The notes under the pieces were generated by a model. It did no database searches. It saw only the letters and a program-made list of their open reading frames with translations, and was not told where the DNA came from. DNA of 8,397 nt, taken from Prasinococcaceae sp. CCMP 1430. Lineage: Eukaryota > Plantae > Prasinodermophyta. This document shows, in pieces, positions 448 to 8,397 of the stretch (positions are counted from its first letter, which is position 1; every line of letters begins with the position of its first letter). The position numbers and the translations under genes are program-made. The stretch covers positions 1 to 8,397 of the forward strand of contig RQSC01000579.1 of NCBI GenBank assembly GCA_013416795.1. The letters are read 5' to 3'.

Positions 448-461
448 TTAAGTTGGAGGGA
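448..461 (+). other. Polypurine tract (plus-strand primer) before the LTR
   Basis: TTAAGTTGGAGGGA ends 1 nt before the LTR-initial TG at 463. Confidence 0.85.
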
Positions 462-462
462 T

Positions 463-1208
463 TGTAATGAATCAGTATATTAGTAGATATAATATTCATT
501 TAAATATAATAGTTAATTTAGTTCAGCCTGCTGAACTTTAGTTAGTAGTCAGTCTGCTGAACTTTAGTTAATAATCAGTCTGCTGGACTTTACATAATTA
601 TCAGTTTAATGACTCGGCCAAAAGCAGCAGGCTGAAGTCAACTTAAGTCAGCTTGCTGACACATTCTTTGACAGCCAGCTGACTTCCGTGCTCGGTAGCA
701 GCGAACTGCCTTGATATGCATCTAAGTACCACCTGCTAGATGAATGGCCAGATGACATCCCCATGATGGATGGCTATTCGGGATGATGGGAGATGGCGGT
801 GGATTTGGTTAACCGAGGTCCTACCAACGTGGTTAACTCCCGGGTAGGCGGTGCCATCGCACTGACCGTTGAACAGTAAACTCATTCCATGTACATATGC
901 TAGGCATTGCTCTCGAGTTCGGCATTCGGAAACGAGGCCAACTCTCTTGTACAGCTTACTGAGAGAGATCTGAATCCAAGGCGAGAAGCCATTGATACGC
1001 ACTGTCTTCTAACCTTGCTTATGTATGAGTTTACTGATTTGCATTATTGATGCTAGTTTACTCTCATTTGACTGACGAGTATTATTCACTGCTAGTGTGT
1101 TGTCCTTTGCCGTTAAACCAGTTAACGGAAAATACCATAAAGATTACTTGCTGATATAAAGATCTTTATTAATTGTTAATCGCCTATTTGGTAAGTCGAT
1201 TCATTTCA
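463..1208 (+). repeat. Long terminal repeat, 746 bp, TG...CA
   Basis: Starts TGTAATGAATC and ends GATTCATTTCA, an 11-bp terminal inverted repeat with 10/11 matches; PPT on the left and PBS on the right. Only one LTR copy is in the window, so the limits rest on these signals. Confidence 0.88.
523..605 (+). repeat. 26-bp tandem repeat, three full units plus a partial, in the presumed U3
   Basis: Units start at 523 (tcagcctgctgaactttagttagtag), 549 (tcagtctgctgaactttagttaataa), 575 (tcagtctgctggactttacataatta) and 601 (tcagt). Confidence 0.9.
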
Positions 1209-1242: not shown

Positions 1243-2721
1243 ATGGTAAGGACAAGGTCTCAAACTAGCAACTCCCGAGACATGGAGAACCAGGATAACG
1301 AGAATGTCGAAAACCAGGCGGAAAGCCATGTAGCGGGAAACCGTACCTATTCGGAAGCAGTAGCGGATACTGCAGCTAGGGAGGCTGCAGATGAGGCAGC
1401 TGCTATTGCCTCAGTCGCAGCTCAGCAAGCTGAGGAGGAGATAGCCAGACTAGAAGCTGAACAAGTAGCAAAGGCCGCTGAAGATATACAAAGGAGGGAA
1501 GGACAGCCAGCTGACGAGCGCACTGTTGAAGAACTTATGGCATCAAGGGCCAATGTTCTGAACCCACCTCCTGCTGTACAACTCAATGTACCCCTAGGTC
1601 AAATACGTGACCGGCTGAATGCGGCAGGAATTGCTGCTGCAGGAGCGAGAGGGATTGTTGAGGACACTACTCAGCGAGTAGATGCCAATGCTGCTGCTGC
1701 ATTTGCTAATCTACCACCCCAGAGTGTAGACTTGGGAGCATTGTTCGTTCAGATGCAGTCGCAAATGGCGACCATGTATCAGTCCCAGCAGGAGGACAAA
1801 AGAATCATAATGTCCCTACTCCGGGACAGAGACCAACTGGGGTCTCACACCACTAGTGGTGGTGGCCGAGGGCCTAGTAAGCCCAAGCCGAAACCTCCCC
1901 AGGACTATGATCCTGAGGGAAACAGAAAATATTACCTGATCAAGTTTCTCGCGGATGTTGAGCAGTGGCTGGAGAACTACCCAGAACTGCAAGATTACGA
2001 GAAGGTCAGGCACACCGGTGCGCTACTGAAAGGCAGTGCCGCAGACTGGTGGCTTTACTGGAAGGAAGAGCGTAAGGCTCGGCAACTCGGTGACCCTACG
2101 TGGGTAGAGTTTGTCGAGAAGTTGCATGAGAAGTTTGATGTCATCAACCAGCAGGAGAAAGCTATCTATGCGATGATCTCCCTGACACTGAAGCAGACCA
2201 CTTCAGTTGCTGAGTTTGCTCAAAAGTTCCAAGAGAACATGATGAAGCAGCCTGATTTGCCAGAACGGTATAGGATAGCATACTTCAGGTATGGCTTGAA
2301 ATCCGAGGTCTCTGGTCATTTTGCTGAGAAAAAGTATGAGAAACTGGCTGACTTGATCCAGGATGCTGACGCCTGGGATCAGCAGCAGTTCAATCACAAG
2401 CGCCAGAGTAACGCTTTGGTGTCTAAGATTGTCAAAAAGCCCCACGGTTCCTACAATGCAGTTGAAGGAGACCAGGCTGAGGATAATCAGGGTGATGAAT
2501 ATGAGTATGAGTACAATGCTATTCAGTCTAGAGGTAGAGGTGGTCCCTCTCGAGGTGGCTATGGAAGGGGTGGTGGTAGGACTAAGCCGAGACCAGCCTC
2601 AGCAAAATCTACTTGCTACCATTGTCAGCAGAAAGGCCACTACAGAGAACAGTGTCCGGTCAAGCACCTGCCTAAGGTCGAGAGAAAAGACCAGCCTTTA
2701 AAAGACAGCAACAGTCAGTAA
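1243..2721 (+). CDS. gag: Gag polyprotein, 492 aa
   Basis: Ala/Glu-rich N-terminus, capsid-like segment LKGSAADWW...[16 protein letters not shown]-rich stretch and a CX2CX4HX4C zinc knuckle ([14 protein letters not shown]). Confidence 0.93.
2614..2655 (+). other. Gag nucleocapsid CCHC zinc knuckle
   Basis: Encodes [14 protein letters not shown]. Confidence 0.92.
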
Positions 2722-2738
2722 TCCAGTCTACTGACTGT
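2697..2738 (+). promoter_or_regulatory. Programmed -1 ribosomal frameshift signal at the gag-pol junction
   Basis: Slippery heptamer T TTA AAA (2697-2703) phased correctly in gag, a 7-nt spacer, then a perfect 10-bp stem ACAGTCAGTA (2711-2720) / TACTGACTGT (2729-2738). The pol frame is -1 to gag and open from 2676. Confidence 0.85.
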
Positions 2739-5700
2739 GAGGATGCTAGAGATAGTGAGTCGTCACTAGCTGCCCTCGTAGCAGGTATTATGGGTCCTGC
2801 TGAACTGGATTCACTATGCATGCCTGACAACCAGATAAAGGAGACCATCAGCAATATAGACGTCCAGAGAGTGCACACTCTGGATGCTCTTGTTCCACCT
2901 GATGTCCAACATTTCTTTGCTACGTCAGGAGAACAATGCGAAAGTCAGGAAAAGACAGTCCCCCCTATCCTACTGCATTGCATGATTGCAGGTAGGAAGG
3001 TGAGGGCATTTGTTGACGGAGGGGCGTCACATACTTTTATCCACAAGGACTTAGTTAAGCGGCTAAGGCTGCCTACTGTCACCCAAGGGAATAGAAAAAT
3101 ATTCCTTGGAGATGCCTCAAGTATCCCGGGAGGAGTTATAACCAAGCCTATTGAGGTCCAGTTAGGTTCTGGCATTGCAGTTCTAACTGAAACGCTTACA
3201 TTTGAGGTACTCAACACTGGCTTTTATGATCTCGTGCTAGGCAGGTCCTGGCTTAATAGACATCAAGCTGAAGTGTGTTGGAGCAGAGGTACAGTTAAAG
3301 TGAGAGGAGCCAGTGATGGGCAGACTGACTTGGCACCCACCAGTGCTCTTCCTCTTGTCCTGTGTGGATGGCAAATGAAGGAAAAGAAGAGGCTTCCAGA
3401 AGGATGCAAGTTGCTGAATGCAATGGAGTTCGTCAAAAGCTGGAACCAGAAGGAAGACAGAATGTTCTGTCTGCTGCTAAGAGAGGTACCTCCTCAACCT
3501 GAAGAAGTGGTTGAGAAAAAGGTAAGCCCTCCGGAGCACCCTACTGCTGCAAAAATTGTTGCTCAGTACACTGATGTATTTAATATGCCTCCAGGACTAC
3601 CCCCTAAGAGGGAAGTAGATCATAGGATTGATTTATTACCTGGGAGTCAGCCACCTTGGCAACGCACGTATGGCTTGTCTTATGTGGAGAGCGAGGAGTT
3701 GAAAACACAGATTGCAGAGCTTGAGGAAAATGGTTATATTTCTCCCAGTAAATCACCTTACGGCGCACCCATCCTATTTGTTAAGAAAAAGGATGGCAGT
3801 ATGCGGATGTGTGTGGATTACAGAGCCCTGAACAGAATTACAGTAAAGAACAAGTATGCTTTACCCAGAATCGAGGACTTGCTTGATACCCTGTCTGGCG
3901 CTAAGGTGTTCAGTAAGATAGATCTCAAGAGTGGTTATCATCAAATCAGAATTGCTGAGGGGGATGAACACAAGACTGCTTTCCGCACACGTTATGGACA
4001 CTATGAGTTCAACGTGATGCCATTTGGACTGACTAATGCTCCTGCTACCTTCATGGGTGCTATGAATGACATTTTCAGACCTTATTTGGATAAGTTTGTG
4101 CAAGTTTTCCTGGATGATATTTTAATTTTCTCTAAAGATGAAGCTCAGCACACTGAACACTTAAAGAAAGTGCTGGACACTCTGCGGAAAAATCACTTGT
4201 ATGCTAAAATGAGCAAGTGTGATTTCTTTAAGGAAAGTATTGAATTCTTAGGCCACGTTGTCAGTAAAGAGGGCATCAGTGTGGATCCTAAGAAAGTCCA
4301 GACCATAAGGGACTGGCCAGTACCACAGTCTGTCTCTGAAGTTAGATCCTTCCTCGGGTTGGCTAACTACTATAGGAGATTTATTGAGAATTATTCCACA
4401 AAGGCCAGTAAACTGACTGACCTTACTAAGAAAGACATCGGGTATGTGTGGGGGGAAGAGCAGCAGGCTGCCTTCCAGACCCTTAAAGATGCCCTTTGTT
4501 CTGCCCCAGTGCTAGCCGTGTATGACCCCAGCAAACCGGTGCAGGTGGTTACTGATGCCTCTGACTTTGCCATGGGTGCTATTTTGTTGCAGCCTGCTGA
4601 CAAAACCACAAAGGATGGTAAGGTACGGCAGGAGTGGCATCCTGTGTTGTATGAGTCTATGAAATTTAATCCAGCGGAGATTAATTACTCAGTGCATGAT
4701 AAAGAGCTGCTAGCTATCATTCATGTACTCAAACAGTGGAGAGCATACTTACATGGTAAAGCTTTTAAGGTGATTACAGATCATCTAGCTCTGACCCACT
4801 TTCAGAAGAAGTCCAAGCTGTCGAGGAGGGAGAACCGCTGGAGCCAGATGCTGGAGCAGTTCCAAGTCCAGATCGACTACAAACCAGGGAAGTTGAATCC
4901 TGCTGATGCACTCTCTAGAAGACCTGACTTGCAAGAAAGGAACTTTAGTCAGCATGCTGTAGATAAAGTCCTGTGTGCACTCACTTCACTAAAGGTGAAA
5001 AAGTCCTTCCTTGAACAACTTAGGAAAGCCTACCTTTCTGACCCAACATTTGAGCCCAGCCCCACTACTGGTGTGTGTCGTGCTACTGCACTCGGGTATA
5101 AGCTCAAGGGAGGGGTCTGGGTGACTGAAACCACTTCAGGCAGGCTGAAGCTGGTCATTCCTAATAACTTGGAAATAAGGTCTCTCTTACTGAGTCAAGC
5201 TCATGACAGTCTCCTGGGTGGACATTTGGGGCAGGCCAAAACTGTTGGCAAACTGGCAAAACATTATCATTGGGAGGGGTTACCCCGGGAGGTCTTGAAA
5301 TATGTCAAGTCCTGTGACCAGTGTCAGAGAAATAAGTCTCGGCACACACCACCCGGAGGTCTCTTGCAACCGCTACCCATCCCAGCGGGACGCTGGGAAA
5401 CTATATCCATGGACTGGGTGGTCTCACTACCAAGAACTGCCAACGGGCATGATTCAATACTGGTAGTCGTGGATAAACTGACAAAAATGGTCATTTTTAT
5501 CCCCACAACTGTCAAAGTGACTGCACTCGAAACAGCGAGACAGTTTTACAACCATGTAGTATGCCAACATGGGCTCCCTTCTAATATCATCTCAGACAGA
5601 GACTCAAAATTCACCTCTAAGTTCTGGAGAGCTTTAATGGGGTTAATGGGAGTCAAACAGCTGCTCAGCACAGCAAACCACCCTCAGACTGATGGGCAGA

Positions 5701-6506
5701 CTGAAAGAACTAACCGAGTTCTGCAGGAGGTGCTGAGAGCATATATTAACCAAAAACAAGATAATTGGGATGACCTGTTGCCTCAAATTCAGTTTGCGGT
5801 CAACAGTGCGGTGCACGCGTCAACGGGCAAAACTCCTTTTGAACTCAGCCTGGGTAGAGTCCCTAAGTCTCCTCTAGATGTGCTAGGGGAATCTTTAACT
5901 CACCCTGAAGGGATTGACAACCCGGTCTCCCTCCAGTTAACTCAGGAGTTTGCTGACACCCTGTCAGAAGTCCAACGAAACTTGCACACGGCCCAAGAAA
6001 ACCAACAAAAATACGCTAATCAACACCGTCGGGAACTGACATTTTCCAAGGGGGATTTAGTCAAACTGCATTCTCAGCACCTGTACCTCCCTGGTGTGGT
6101 CAAGAAAAAGCTTGGCCCTGTCTGGGTCGGTCCATATTCGGTGGTCCGTCGTGTCGGTCAGAATGCTTACAAACTGAACATGTCAGCTGAATACAAGGGG
6201 CACCCGGTCTTTAATGTCTCCTTCCTGGAACCGTACATCAAAGGTGATACACTGTTCACAGGTCGGTTCCCTGTCCAACCGGGACCGGTCCCCGCTGTCC
6301 GGGACGGCGACCCTGAGGAATATGAGGTCGATGAGATTTTAGACGCTCGCTCGGTCCGTCGATCGTCTAAATATGTCATGAAATACCTCATTCGATGGAA
6401 GGGTTACGATGCCTCTGGGGACACTTGGGAGTTTAAGGACCACTTGACCAATGCCAAAGGGGCGTTGACACGGTTCCACCTTCGGGCCGCTGGAGTCCCT
6501 CCATAA
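2697..6506 (+). CDS. pol: Pol polyprotein (protease, RT, RNase H, integrase, chromodomain), probably made as a Gag-Pol fusion
   Basis: Frame is open 2676-6506 and the track ORF starts at ATG 2790. Motifs: [84 protein letters not shown], chromodomain. Confidence 0.97.
2970..3303 (+). other. Aspartic protease domain (limits approximate)
   Basis: [14 protein letters not shown] with catalytic Asp at 3015-3017, and downstream [10 protein letters not shown]. Confidence 0.85.
3618..4265 (+). other. Reverse transcriptase core (limits approximate)
   Basis: [30 protein letters not shown] at 4107-4118, FLGHVVS. Confidence 0.95.
4545..4919 (+). other. RNase H domain (limits approximate)
   Basis: [42 protein letters not shown]. 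Confidence 0.92.
5199..6240 (+). other. Integrase: HHCC zinc finger, DDE core and GPY/F region (limits approximate)
   Basis: AHDSLLGGH...CDQC (5202-5324), [23 protein letters not shown] at 6129-6137. Confidence 0.93.
6318..6482 (+). other. Integrase C-terminal chromodomain
   Basis: [43 protein letters not shown] fits the chromodomain pattern and keeps the three aromatic-cage positions (Y, W, Y). Confidence 0.92.
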
Positions 6507-6554
6507 CTGTCATTTCAGTTGACACGGGAAGGTGACAGGCGGTCCTGTCTCCAT

Positions 6555-6569
6555 TTAAGTTGGAGGGGA
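6555..6569 (+). other. Internal second copy of the polypurine tract
   Basis: TTAAGTTGGAGGG (6555-6567) is identical to 448-460 and starts 49 nt after the pol stop; no LTR follows it. Confidence 0.75.
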
Positions 6570-6669
6570 AAATATATGACAGTTAGTGAGCGAGAGCGAT
6601 AAAAACACACTCATACGTTTATGTGTAGCGCATCGCAACTACGTCAACTTTTAGCAATCATCCTGTAAG

Positions 6670-6772
6670 GTAAACAGCAGCGAAGCCACTATACTAAATA
6701 CTAACATACTTCCTGCAATCCCTATGACAAAGGTCCATATCCTACTAACTTGTGCCCTGGTTACATGTGCAG
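6670..6772 (+). other. Putative 103-nt intron in the ORF3 leader
   Basis: Donor AAG|GTAAAC at 6670, TACTAAC at 6699-6705 and 6743-6749, acceptor TGCAG|G ending at 6772, one base before ATG 6774. Polypyrimidine tract is weak. Confidence 0.5.
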
Positions 6773-6773
6773 G

Positions 6774-8397
6774 ATGGCGCCCACCACACAAAAGGAGGAC
6801 AGAAAGCGCAAGGCAGAAGAAGCCAGGAGGACAATGGAGCAATACCAGAAGGAGCTGGCGGCGACGTCCCTCACCAGGAGAGAACAAGAAAGGGTCCGCA
6901 AACAACAAGAGGCGGCAGAAGAGGCACAGAGGAAGAAGGATCAGGAAGCGGAAAACCTCAGGAAAGCTGAGGAGGAGAGACAGAAGAAACAACAAGAAGA
7001 AGCGGCAGCGGCAGAGGAGGAGAAAAGGAAAAAGATTGAAGCGGACAGACAGAAGAGCTTGGCCACTTACAGGTATACTGTGGTGGGTGGCCAAAACTTC
7101 GATAACCTGAAGGAAGCATTGCTGGCAGCCCAGGAGATCAACAGGCTGGAACAGACAACACTGCTACAGAAGGAAGGAGCTACAGCACTGGACAGGTACA
7201 TCGAGACACACACCGGCGTGGTCCTTTACGAAGATTATGCTAAGATGGTGGGCTATACAGCAGAGCAGGCCCGGTATCTCGCAGATGATTCAGAGGACAA
7301 GCCGGTCCCCATACCGGGAATAGTGGGAGATCAGAGACTCATCCGGATGGTGAGCATGCGGCCCGATAGCTTTAAGGATACGGTATTCTACCTCACACTC
7401 CTGCCAGCTTACAATGAAGTTGAGAGAAGGAGCTGGGAGTACTTGGCCAGGGAAGCAGGACAGCAGATGTTCTCTCCCCACTGGTTCCCGTGTAAACTGA
7501 GGAAGGCTGAGCACGGACCCCAGTACTACCAGCAGCCAACAGACTGGAGGTGGATGACCGTCACAAATAAGAAGCAGGAGTGTGACCGAGCCCAACCGGA
7601 TGACTTCCACTATGGCCTAGACGGCTATCTCATCCTACCACCTCACATTGCCCCTTGGGACCCCAGGCTGAATGGATGCCTGAGCAATATGAATGCAGAG
7701 ACCAAGGAACATAGGAGGAGGGGAAGAGACTACTTCTCTAAGGGAAAGCATGCCTTTGTCAAATGGGCAAAGAATGCAGGCCGGATAGATATCAGCAGGC
7801 TGAAGGCCAAGCAACCTCCAGCGCGCCCTAAGAAAGGGAGGTCGGTAGACTACTCCATGTCTACTAGGGAGCAGGACGACTTAGTGGACGAGACCCCTAC
7901 TCTCTCCGAGGAGGAGGATGAGGAGGATGAGGAAGAAGAACAAGGCAGAGGAGAAGCATCAGCAGCAGGTACTCAGGATACCCAGCGAGAGGCAGTGGCA
8001 CTTCCTAAAGAACCACGATCAGGTGTGTGGAATGTGATCCCCGTTATGGCGACAACTGGACCCCGCGCTCGCTCCCCCAGCCCACCTGCCCAAGCAGGGG
8101 AAGAAGCTGATCTGACTGTACTGGGCAGCAGACACAGGCAGAAATCCCCAGAGGACAGGGGTGCCAGAAGAGGGACACGCGGGTGGGCCAGAGGTATGCC
8201 AGCCTCCCCCTCCGCTCAGGGGCATGTACCTCTAGCCAATGTATTTCAGCATCCTACTGGAATGCCTGTCTATGTGGGCATCAACACCCAAGTGGTTGAA
8301 GAGCAGGCTACCATCCTTCGTTCTCCTCGAGGCCCAACTTTAGAGCAAACAGGGTTCTTTAGAAGGCCAGCTGACAGGCCTAGAGGGCTGTCCAGAT
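6774..8397 (+). CDS. ORF3, unknown accessory protein, 3' truncated by the window (about 558 aa predicted)
   Basis: Translated by hand with no stop in 541 codons (MAPTTQKEDRKRKAEEARRTMEQYQKELAA...LEQTGFFRRPADRPRGLSR). An in-frame ATG also lies at 6765 and the previous in-frame stop is at 6702. It joins the C-terminus seen at 2-349. Confidence 0.9.
   Translation, partial: MAPTTQKEDRKRKAEEARRTMEQYQKELAATSLTRREQERVRKQQEAAEEAQRKKDQEAENLRKAEEERQKKQQEEAAAAEEEKRKKIEADRQKSLATYRYTVVGGQNFDNLKEALLAAQEINRLEQTTLLQKEGATALDRYIETHTGVVLYEDYAKMVGYTAEQARYLADDSEDKPVPIPGIVGDQRLIRMVSMRPDSFKDTVFYLTLLPAYNEVERRSWEYLAREAGQQMFSPHWFPCKLRKAEHGPQYYQQPTDWRWMTVTNKKQECDRAQPDDFHYGLDGYLILPPHIAPWDPRLNGCLSNMNAETKEHRRRGRDYFSKGKHAFVKWAKNAGRIDISRLKAKQPPARPKKGRSVDYSMSTREQDDLVDETPTLSEEEDEEDEEEEQGRGEASAAGTQDTQREAVALPKEPRSGVWNVIPVMATTGPRARSPSPPAQAGEEADLTVLGSRHRQKSPEDRGARRGTRGWARGMPASPSAQGHVPLANVFQHPTGMPVYVGINTQVVEEQATILRSPRGPTLEQTGFFRRPADRPRGLSR
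8102..8397 (+). repeat. Direct repeat of 1-296 (period 8101 bp, about 96% identity)
   Basis: Substitutions at positions 22, 30, 34, 57, 83, 84, 90, 100, 133, 178, 232 and 277 of the left copy. Confidence 0.97.

Follow-up and report, generated by a model that had tools for sequence, protein, structure and literature searches.

Chromoviruses form the Ty3/gypsy lineage of greatest age and widest distribution and as a rule carry gag and pol only. The locus analyzed here, a stretch of 8,397 nt (hereafter, the window), holds an element of this kind in which a further long open reading frame, ORF3, lies between pol and the PPT, raising the question whether ORF3 is a genuine third gene and, if so, what it encodes and where it came from.

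Organization of the host element

The host element is a chromodomain-bearing Ty3/gypsy chromovirus (Metaviridae), as the first-pass annotation had it. The window shows it in a permuted view, with an ORF3 tail followed by one LTR, gag, pol and ORF3:

2–349, + strand: 3' tail of ORF3, upstream copy; 115 codons plus a stop at 347–349
448–460, + strand: purine-rich 13-mer in the PPT position, directly 5' of the LTR; an exact repeat of 6555–6567
463–1208, + strand: LTR, the sole one in the window; 746 nt, with TG start and CA end
523–605, + strand: 26-nt repeat, 3.2 units, within the LTR (U3-like part)
1210–1221, + strand: candidate primer-binding site; TGG starts 1 nt past the LTR end
1243–2721, + strand: gag; 492 aa, open
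2676–6506, + strand: pol frame; open from 2676, first ATG at 2790, 1238 aa from there
2697–2703, + strand: candidate -1 frameshift site; X XXY YYZ heptamer, in register
6507–6773, + strand: pol-ORF3 spacer; 267 nt, including the first 13-mer copy (6555–6567)
6774–8397, + strand: ORF3; 541 codons, uninterrupted, running past the window end

The LTR, in which 9 of the 10 terminal bases are inverted-complementary, is common to the ORF3 tail upstream of it and the gag downstream of it, indicating a tandem or permuted layout that matches the previously described 'tandem elements with mutual LTRs' (PMC11728184). The candidate primer-binding site lies where the positional criterion of PMC6317226 places it. 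There is no self-priming complement of at least 8 nt in the LTR, and neither the window nor 20 loci contain tRNA genes with which the site could be compared. An Rfam search gave no match.

Both coding regions have the composition expected of a chromovirus. Gag carries a capsid domain and a zinc knuckle (Ty3_capsid, 4e-10; Retrotrans_gag, 2e-8; zf-CCHC, 8e-4), and the domains of pol follow in the order protease, RT, RNase H, integrase, SH3 and chromodomain, the last (Chromo, 2e-8, aa 1178–1230) with 3/3 aromatic-cage positions present. The two frames overlap by 46 nt, and the overlap holds the candidate frameshift heptamer. The closest pol is 49% identical, and seed-plant chromoviruses are 42–47% identical in pol. 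The interiors of gag and pol contain 0 stops and 0 frameshifts, and the earlier description of the element as intact holds for these two genes, but the window has only one LTR and its end cuts ORF3.

A long third frame that looks coding

ORF3 had been described as a sense frame of at least 541 codons that is invisible in the ORF track, and we confirmed both points. The frame contains 0 stops and is missing from the list of open reading frames because it exits the window end; the predicted full product is ~558 aa, a length that uses the stop of the upstream copy. ORF3 lies in a different frame from pol and begins 267 nt after the pol stop. The remaining five frames of 6774–8397 contain 17, 26, 24, 9 and 18 stops, the first two counts being those of the other sense frames. 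The only tandem array in ORF3 is a 9-nt unit repeated 2.6 times (23 nt) within the acidic run of the protein, so the openness of the frame is not a product of tandem repeats, the origin excluded by the rule of PMC6317226.

Under a codon model trained on the gag and pol of the element, ORF3 looks coding: its frame scores +0.10 bits/codon (core +0.14, tail +0.09), compared with -0.30 and -0.43 for the two other frames over the whole of ORF3. We lean, if only modestly, towards ORF3 being a genuine accessory gene of this element family.

Homology searches

The core of ORF3, which the first-pass annotation had been unable to assign, stayed unrecognizable in Pfam, the PDB, 1.84 billion protein representatives, contig collections and 82 related chromovirus loci. 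In Pfam, searched up to an E of 10 with the whole of ORF3 and with three fragments of it, no family rose above its curated threshold, the best scores being 15 bits vs cut-offs of 27–34 bits; nor did the profile of any described eORF domain (plant mobile domain, Transposase_28, Athila ORF-1) match above threshold. No relative was found among PDB sequences queried with the whole of ORF3 and with the core, among the 1.84 billion representatives searched with the core by phmmer with no length filter, or by word-seeded searches with the core and the C-terminal part. Peptide-pattern scans of three contig collections (metagenome, viral and prokaryotic genome) found nothing, and ORF3 had no match in phage records (tblastn), among the 120 nearest pol proteins (phmmer --max) or in the gag of the element itself (BLASTP). 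The tBLASTn search for homologues that had been proposed earlier, run here against the 82 chromovirus loci, likewise returned none. Gag and pol, looked up as exact sequences, hit no contig. No homologue outside retrotransposons was present in the collections searched, where the source organism seems unrepresented, given that the closest pol is only 49% identical.

The upstream copy and the origin of ORF3

Positions 1–296 of the window repeat 8102–8397 at 96% identity, and past this shared part the upstream copy continues in the ORF3 frame for 17 codons before its stop at 347–349. Neither a stop nor a frameshift occurs in the 98 shared codons, in which the two copies differ by 12 substitutions, 6 synonymous and 6 non-synonymous by path counting. 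The dN/dS of 0.33, obtained from two copies and 98 codons, is not significant (one-sided P 0.059) and points weakly towards the selection that the first-pass annotation had suggested. Much the same applies to the proposed duplication of the PPT on the two sides of ORF3: the 13-mers at 6555–6567 and 448–460 are one exact match, with ~0.004 expected by chance, but gapped local alignment around them does not rise above shuffles.

In its third codon positions, ORF3 departs from the rest of the element, with a GC3 of 0.58 (core 0.62) vs 0.49–0.50 in gag and pol and an RSCU correlation with gag or pol of 0.4, where gag and pol correlate with each other at 0.65. The differing composition and the copy of the PPT 13-mer on each side fit a putative origin of ORF3 outside the gag-pol lineage. 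We also considered that the module arose as a LINE-mediated retrocopy and rejected this, since the second 13-mer is not preceded by an A-run and the first is not followed by a T-run.

An origin outside the lineage could also mean that ORF3 is a piece of a host gene, recently transduced by template switching or read-through and carried by a few copies as a neutral passenger. The divergent third-position composition, the identical 13-mers bracketing the module and the visibility of just two copies, both in one tandem locus, fit such an event, and sense-oriented transduction has been described in LTR retrotransposons (PMC7264820). We nevertheless consider it unlikely for ORF3: the copies are 4% diverged, with the frame kept in both and a synonymous excess, no host-like homologue appeared among the 1.84 billion representatives (where the source genome seems to be absent), and the CpG depletion of ORF3, at 0.41 equal to that of gag and pol, speaks against a very recent capture. 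Conserved aORFs are separated from one-off transductions by their presence in all or most copies of a family (PMC7264820); two partial copies lie within the window, and none of the collections searched yielded further ones.

The predicted ORF3 product

The translation of ORF3 falls into distinct parts:

6774–7058, + strand: ORF3 aa 1–95; 54% charged (27 K/R, 24 D/E), 7% hydrophobic, predicted long helix
7059–7823, + strand: ORF3 aa 96–350; aromatic-rich core, family not recognizable
7824–8397, + strand: ORF3 aa 351–541; basic cluster, acidic run, then a Pro/Ser/Gly/Arg-rich tail predicted to be unstructured
7908–7940, + strand: acidic run; 11 residues

This layout agrees with that given by the first-pass annotation in its charged N-terminus, its Trp/Tyr/His/Cys core (29 aromatic residues, 3 Cys and 7 His) and its basic, acidic and RS/SP segments, the RS/SP repeats extending into the tail of the upstream copy; it differs in the N-terminal coiled coil. 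Helices are predicted at aa 5–30 and 35–102 (block pLDDT 73–91), and modeling thus yields a confident prediction of a long charged helix over aa 5–102. However, only 8 of the first 95 residues are hydrophobic, too few for heptad packing, which favors one lone charged helix over a coiled coil. AlphaFold modeling of the core, another analysis proposed earlier, was run as AlphaFold2 without an alignment and gave an unusable model (pLDDT 34 for the core, 42 overall), with the N-terminal helix alone confident. The core, ~250 aa, is probably folded, although its kind is not recognized.

LINE-1 ORF1p has an N-terminal helix for multimerisation, a central nucleic-acid-binding domain and a basic tail. 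ORF3, with its long N-terminal helix, central mixed core and subsequent basic clusters, resembles it in layout only, and could on that ground be an additional particle protein with a structural or chaperone function, acting on the element RNA in the cytoplasm. We find this improbable, since the ORF3 helix is devoid of the hydrophobic heptad positions required for coiled-coil multimers, no RNA-binding family is matched in sequence, and gag already provides a capsid and a zinc knuckle.

About half of the ORF3 protein is low-complexity or predicted to be disordered, and these large low-complexity parts, combined with the lack of homologues, could suggest that the frame is open but not a gene, that is, a decaying or never-functional stretch that owes its openness to a purine-rich composition. 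The stretch is indeed poor in T (15%), so that stops are less frequent in it. Yet, with a stop probability per codon of 0.041 at this composition, 541 open codons have a probability of ~1.2e-10, and the longest open run in 2000 shuffles of the stretch averaged 108 and never exceeded 303 codons. The two other sense frames with their 17 and 26 stops, a codon model that is positive in the ORF3 frame only and the open second copy also stand against this reading, which we rate as quite improbable. ORF3 is very unlikely to be env-like or to serve cell-to-cell transfer, roles suggested for the Athila, Bagy-2 and SIRE ORFs: its position and orientation are those of env and a possible splice acceptor precedes the start codon, but the highest 19-residue Kyte-Doolittle mean of 0.73 implies no membrane segment, the N-terminal 30 aa are strongly hydrophilic (mean -1.78), so that hydropathy detects neither the signal peptide nor the one or more transmembrane segments expected of an env-like product, and no envelope family is matched. 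Thus, as the first-pass annotation had stated, ORF3 sits in the env position without being env-like, and it is not a cell-entry protein.

Expression signals

Several motifs upstream of ORF3 bear on how an accessory gene in this position might be expressed:

1190–1196, + strand: donor-like GGTAAGT, candidate 5' splice site; in the LTR, 3' part, 12 nt from the LTR end
6699–6705 and 6743–6749, + strand: TACTAAC motifs in the spacer, branch-point-like, at most 75 nt upstream of the ORF3 start
6771–6772, + strand: acceptor-like AG, one base 5' of the ORF3 start and the first AG past the second TACTAAC

The whole window has 3 occurrences of TACTAAC, compared with 0.58 expected, and 24 nt separate the second spacer copy from the first downstream AG. 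Around the ORF3 ATG, position -3 is A and position +4 is G. Four ATGs lie within the spacer and none in 1051–1242. Because a branch-point-like motif and an AG directly precede the start codon, ORF3 is most likely expressed from a spliced subgenomic mRNA, judging by these motifs, with AG 6771–6772 as the putative acceptor. With splicing at this point, the four spacer ATGs that precede ORF3 would be lost from the mRNA, comparable to retroviral env and the env-like ORF of barley Bagy-2; expression through an acceptor shortly before the ORF is documented for Bagy-2 (PMC7264820) and plausible for ORF3 as well. The GGTAAGT in the LTR may serve as the donor, with the junction at 1191/1192, and 1245/1246 is a second candidate; donor-like sites are nevertheless not enriched in the window (8 vs 9.7 expected), and of the intron proposed in the first-pass annotation it is the 3' splice-site-like signal that stands out, whereas donors occur at chance frequency. 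Folding of the spacer RNA does not surpass that of shuffles (z 0.28), and an RNA target element for ORF3 was not identified.

Possible roles and comparison with known systems

The ORF3 product would be a soluble, non-membrane protein comprising the charged helix, the core, NLS-like basic clusters, the acidic run and an RS/SP tail predicted to be disordered. From this layout we tentatively propose, while rating it as unlikely, that it serves the element as an accessory factor in the nucleus, associated with RNA or RNP, which might regulate the balance or export of the spliced and unspliced RNA of the element or contribute to evasion of silencing. Complex retroviruses encode regulators of the Rev/Rex type, and the basic clusters and RS-rich tail of ORF3 would suit a similar function in RNA processing or export; in contrast to Rev/Rex, however, ORF3 is several times larger, and no homology was found. 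If the ORF3 mRNA indeed arises through removal of gag-pol by splicing, the element has to keep its spliced and unspliced RNA in balance. A stronger version, in which ORF3 represents a new family with a new fold that functions as a nuclear RNA regulator (splicing/export balance) or a counter-silencing factor, translated from its own spliced mRNA, is doubtful; if true, it would amount to a 'complex retrotransposon' organization in a non-seed green-lineage host, analogous to that of complex retroviruses.

VANC, from the VANDAL DNA transposons (PMC11728184), is likewise an accessory protein dispensable for the core chemistry of transposition, but it belongs to another transposon class and shows no similarity to ORF3 in any search, so the analogy extends to 'accessory ORF' alone. 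Within chromoviruses, the 5' extra ORFs of Tekay elements (sunflower Tekay group 2, Retrosat-2 and Sb7) also encode orphan proteins, of ~400 aa, with a nuclear localization signal, few helices and long disordered regions, conserved within the family and with no assigned function (PMC11728184). These ORFs, however, lie upstream of gag, whereas ORF3 follows pol, and sequence similarity between them was not detected. With the env-like Athila and Bagy-2 ORFs and with retroviral and errantiviral env, ORF3 has in common the site between pol and the PPT, but it differs from them in the lack of a signal peptide and a transmembrane segment, its strong charge and its NLS-like and RS/SP segments.

The closest counterparts are the extra ORFs of the classes eORF-3'F (Neumann et al. 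2019, PMC6317226) and aORF-3S (Vicient and Casacuberta 2020, PMC7264820), with which ORF3 shares position, orientation and size: it exceeds 250 codons and lies downstream of the polyprotein, on the same strand and separate from it. Like these ORFs, it lies outside tandem repeats, has no conserved domain (as is the case for ~79% of them) and appears to have been acquired independently; our searches, however, returned no sequence similarity between them and ORF3. Such ORFs are typical of SIRE and Athila/Tat/Ogre, which are not chromoviruses, whereas the chromovirus lineages are described as mostly without them. We infer that ORF3 is a lineage-specific member of eORF-3'F or aORF-3S in a chromovirus family. 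What is new here is a chromovirus case of the already described orphan extra ORFs of LTR retrotransposons.

Extra ORFs in related elements

Extra ORFs of at least 250 codons occur in 3372 of 8453 plant Ty3/gypsy elements and form 314 mutually dissimilar groups, with a domain match in only 21% (PMC6317226), so that orphan status is the rule for an eORF, not the exception. Sense ORFs located after pol, and the spliced expression of such ORFs, have been described as well (PMC7264820). On present evidence, ORF3 is one orphan among hundreds of unrelated extra-ORF groups and has mainly catalogue value. If conserved in its family, it would add a chromovirus example, and one with a clear expression signal, to the poorly understood accessory proteins of retrotransposons; a third gene, if stably kept, would show that chromoviruses, too, recruit accessory functions.

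The first-pass view that chromoviruses seldom carry extra ORFs is supported by our survey of related loci, in which extra ORFs after pol were uncommon, in agreement with PMC6317226. Several candidates in this survey were rejected on inspection: the long sense ORFs after pol in five loci (L060, L008, L025, L024 and L070) are the gag of the next copy, the one in L022 resembles pol, with RT, RNase H and integrase, and the apparent extra ORFs of L069 and L072 match the gag region of other loci.

A permuted view of one chromovirus family

The window opens and closes on the same sequence: positions 1–296 and 8102–8397 are repeats of 96% identity, each reaching a window end, and the order across the window is ORF3 tail, LTR, gag, pol and ORF3, the sense frame that follows pol. 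The window thus shows a single LTR-retrotransposon family in permuted order; its parts are as follows.

448–460, plus strand: purine-rich 13-mer immediately 5' of the LTR
463–1208, plus strand: the sole LTR in the window, starting with TG and ending with CA, terminal inverted complementarity at 9 of 10 bases
523–605: 3.2 copies of a 26-nt unit, matching at 87%, within U3-like LTR sequence; the array may be enhancer-like
TGG starting 1 base past the LTR end: primer-binding-site (PBS) position, assigned by position only
1243–2721, plus strand: gag, with Ty3 capsid and zinc knuckle
2790 (first ATG) to 6506 (stop), plus strand: pol, with protease, reverse transcriptase (RT), RNase H, integrase, SH3 and chromodomain
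2697–2703, plus strand: heptamer of the X XXY YYZ type, in register, within the gag/pol overlap

The permuted order fits two tandem copies with a common LTR, which is its likely cause; such an arrangement has been described for sunflower elements (PMC11728184), and the same pol-LTR-gag order recurs in several related contigs from metagenomes (L008, L024, L025, L060 and L070). The positional criterion for the PBS was taken from PMC6317226; the LTR contained no self-priming complement of 8 nt or more, and neither the window nor 20 related loci yielded a tRNA gene for comparison. A 17-nt AT-rich near-duplication lies at 487–520, just 5' of the 26-nt array.

Neither gag nor pol contains a stop or frameshift. 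The pol frame, open from 2676, overlaps gag by 46 nt (2676–2721) in the –1 frame, and the in-register heptamer in this overlap suggests programmed –1 frameshifting. The element had been described as intact, which holds for gag and pol but could be verified only partly, since the downstream copy has its 3' LTR beyond the window. The chromodomain (6300–6506) keeps all three aromatic-cage positions, a state that within plants is confined to non-seed lineages, namely, algae, mosses and club-mosses (PMC6317226), and that hints at a green-lineage host outside the seed plants. In the pol coding region 5' of the chromodomain, positions 6261–6312 form a GC-rich overlapping palindrome with 32-nt arms, 72% complementary. 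Three of the nearest pol relatives (P0092, carried by locus L001, P0034 and P0040; 1731–1916 aa) have about 650–870 residues with no Pfam match between protease and RT, a large insert that is missing from the pol of the window and unrelated to ORF3.

ORF3 is a long, very probably coding frame after pol

ORF3 runs for 541 codons without a stop (6774–8397, plus strand), a stretch in which the remaining five frames contain 17, 26, 24, 9 and 18 stops. The probability of such a run under the local composition (15% T) is about 1.2e-10, the longest open run in 2000 shuffles of the stretch was at most 303 codons, and the only tandem array inside ORF3 is 23 nt long. Its ATG at 6774, with A at –3 and G at +4, is the first in-frame ATG past the preceding stop. 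In the upstream copy, the frame continues 17 codons beyond the last codon of the window to a stop at 347–349, giving a protein of about 558 aa. The length of at least 541 codons claimed in the first-pass annotation is therefore borne out, as is the absence of ORF3 from the ORF list, for which the sole cause is that the frame runs off the window end. The antisense frame with only 9 stops probably just reflects the purine richness of the sense strand. Minus-strand open frames of 147 codons (6651–7094) and 106 codons (7290–7610) overlap ORF3.

A codon model trained on the element's own gag and pol gave +0.10 bits per codon for the ORF3 frame (core, aa 96–350, +0.14; C-terminal part, +0.09), against –0.30 and –0.43 for the two other frames over the whole of ORF3; the second half of pol scored +0.23 under its own codon model. 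ORF3 is a real feature and, very probably, one of the element's genes. Between the two ORF3 copies there are 12 differences over 296 positions, none of which breaks the frame, and path counting yielded 6 synonymous and 6 non-synonymous changes. The resulting dN/dS of 0.33 points toward the selection that had been proposed but falls short of significance (one-sided binomial P = 0.059), so that selection on ORF3 is only suggested.

CpG depletion in ORF3 (0.41) is on par with that in gag (0.48) and pol (0.40). GC3 is 0.58 in ORF3 overall and 0.62 in its core, compared with 0.49–0.50 in gag and pol, and synonymous codon usage of ORF3 correlates with that of gag or pol at r of about 0.4, versus 0.65 between gag and pol. 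Both the third-position GC and the codon usage fit a different origin of ORF3 from gag-pol.

The ORF3 protein and the search for relatives

ORF3 is not env-like, because it has no hydrophobic segment (19-residue hydropathy maximum 0.73) and its N-terminus is hydrophilic, in agreement with the membrane-free protein initially described. Of residues 1–95, 54% are charged and only 8 are hydrophobic, and AlphaFold2 run without an alignment predicted helices at aa 5–30 and 35–102 (block pLDDT 73–91). Of the N-terminal coiled coil proposed earlier, the charged helix stands, but so few hydrophobic positions suit a single charged helix better, and we favor that reading. The core has 29 aromatic residues, 3 Cys and 7 His; both structure models of it, including the AlphaFold check that had been proposed, had pLDDT <50 and were unusable. 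Farther along the protein lie the following segments.

aa 314–316 and 351–356: basic clusters
aa 379–389: acidic run of 11 residues
past the acidic run: tail rich in Pro, Ser, Gly and Arg, with RS/SP runs that extend into the last 17 residues of the upstream copy

The core proved as unrecognizable as first reported. ORF3, whole and in pieces, had no match in Pfam, and no relative was detected among PDB sequences, in metagenome, viral and prokaryotic contigs, among the 120 nearest pol proteins, by a phmmer search with the core as query against 1.84 billion representative proteins unfiltered by length, by word-seeded searches with the core and C-terminal part, or by tblastn against 82 related chromovirus loci; nor did it resemble the element's own gag. 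The closest pol proteins, from Closterium, Haematococcus, seed plants and metagenome contigs, are only 43–49% identical, and exact look-ups of gag and pol in sequence collections gave no match; hence both host and element family appear to be absent from the collections. The lack of ORF3 matches fits an orphan protein and an unsampled host alike.

A predicted spliced mRNA for ORF3

The signals relevant to ORF3 expression are as follows.

6507–6773, plus strand: spacer between pol and ORF3, 267 nt, with four ATGs ahead of the ORF3 start
6699 and 6743, plus strand: TACTAAC motifs in the spacer
1190: donor-like GGTAAG inside the LTR, upstream of the PBS position
1245: donor-like GGTAAG immediately 3' of the gag ATG

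The four spacer ATGs imply inefficient scanning from unspliced RNA, or from a transcript begun far upstream in the spacer. Counting both strands, TACTAAC occurs 3 times in the window versus 0.58 expected, a count of at least 3 arising in only 4 of 200 shuffles. The second motif lies 24 nt 5' of the first downstream AG (6771–6772), itself one base ahead of the ATG, which is how a branch point and its 3' splice site are typically arranged. Given the spacer ATGs, this geometry and the lack of any ATG between 1051 and 1242, the most economical model is that ORF3 would be translated from a spliced subgenomic mRNA with its acceptor AG at 6771–6772. For the intron originally postulated, then, there is an acceptor-like signal, but donor-like motifs are at chance level (8 observed, 9.7 expected), with search patterns taken from the window itself (donor-like, 1245–1250; branch-point-like, 6743–6749). 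Folding of the spacer RNA is not stronger than that of shuffled sequences (z 0.28). Retroviral env and the ORF of barley Bagy-2 are expressed from spliced subgenomic mRNAs (Bagy-2: PMC7264820).

Origin of ORF3 and its place among extra ORFs

One exact 13-mer occurs both at 6555–6567, 49 nt past the pol stop, and at 448–460, immediately before the LTR, where by our own arithmetic about 0.004 chance matches between the two stretches are expected. The duplication of the polypurine tract (PPT) suggested at the outset thus has this exact match in its favor, but flanking similarity is weak, gapped local alignment scoring no higher than shuffles. The pair is compatible with, without proving, insertion of an ORF3 module beside an ancestral PPT. 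A LINE-mediated retrocopy was rejected, no A-run or T-run marking one.

We surveyed the 31 related loci with at least 1.5 kb past the chromodomain. The long sense ORFs examined after pol turned out to belong to the gag or pol of a second or following copy, and candidates in L069 and L072 were rejected as gag-like on a second look. The exception comes from a distant chromovirus relative: a sense ORF of 486 codons (L073:15207–16664), about 1.8 kb beyond pol, that matched neither Pfam nor ORF3 nor other loci and may be an unrelated neighboring gene. In this neighborhood, then, an extra ORF behind pol is unusual, and both the survey and the literature (PMC6317226) support the earlier statement that chromoviruses seldom carry extra ORFs. 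Those described so far in chromoviruses lie 5' of gag (PMC11728184), and extra ORFs (eORFs) of plant LTR retrotransposons are missing from lineages whose internal region is nearly all polyprotein (PMC6317226).

The eORFs of at least 250 codons reported in 3372 of 8453 plant Ty3/gypsy elements form 314 mutually dissimilar groups, and only 21.4% have a domain match; the authors regard them as independently acquired, their function being questionable or unknown (PMC6317226). Sense ORFs located past pol form a recognized class (PMC7264820), whose definition fits ORF3, making it one more case of an already described class. The hallmarks of env-like proteins are absent from ORF3, and no known eORF domain matches it. 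It might have one of the roles initially imagined for it, among them one like that of VANC, an analogy that drew support from none of the ORF3 searches. Less usual are its chromovirus host with a classical chromodomain, its size and its clean splice-acceptor-like signal.
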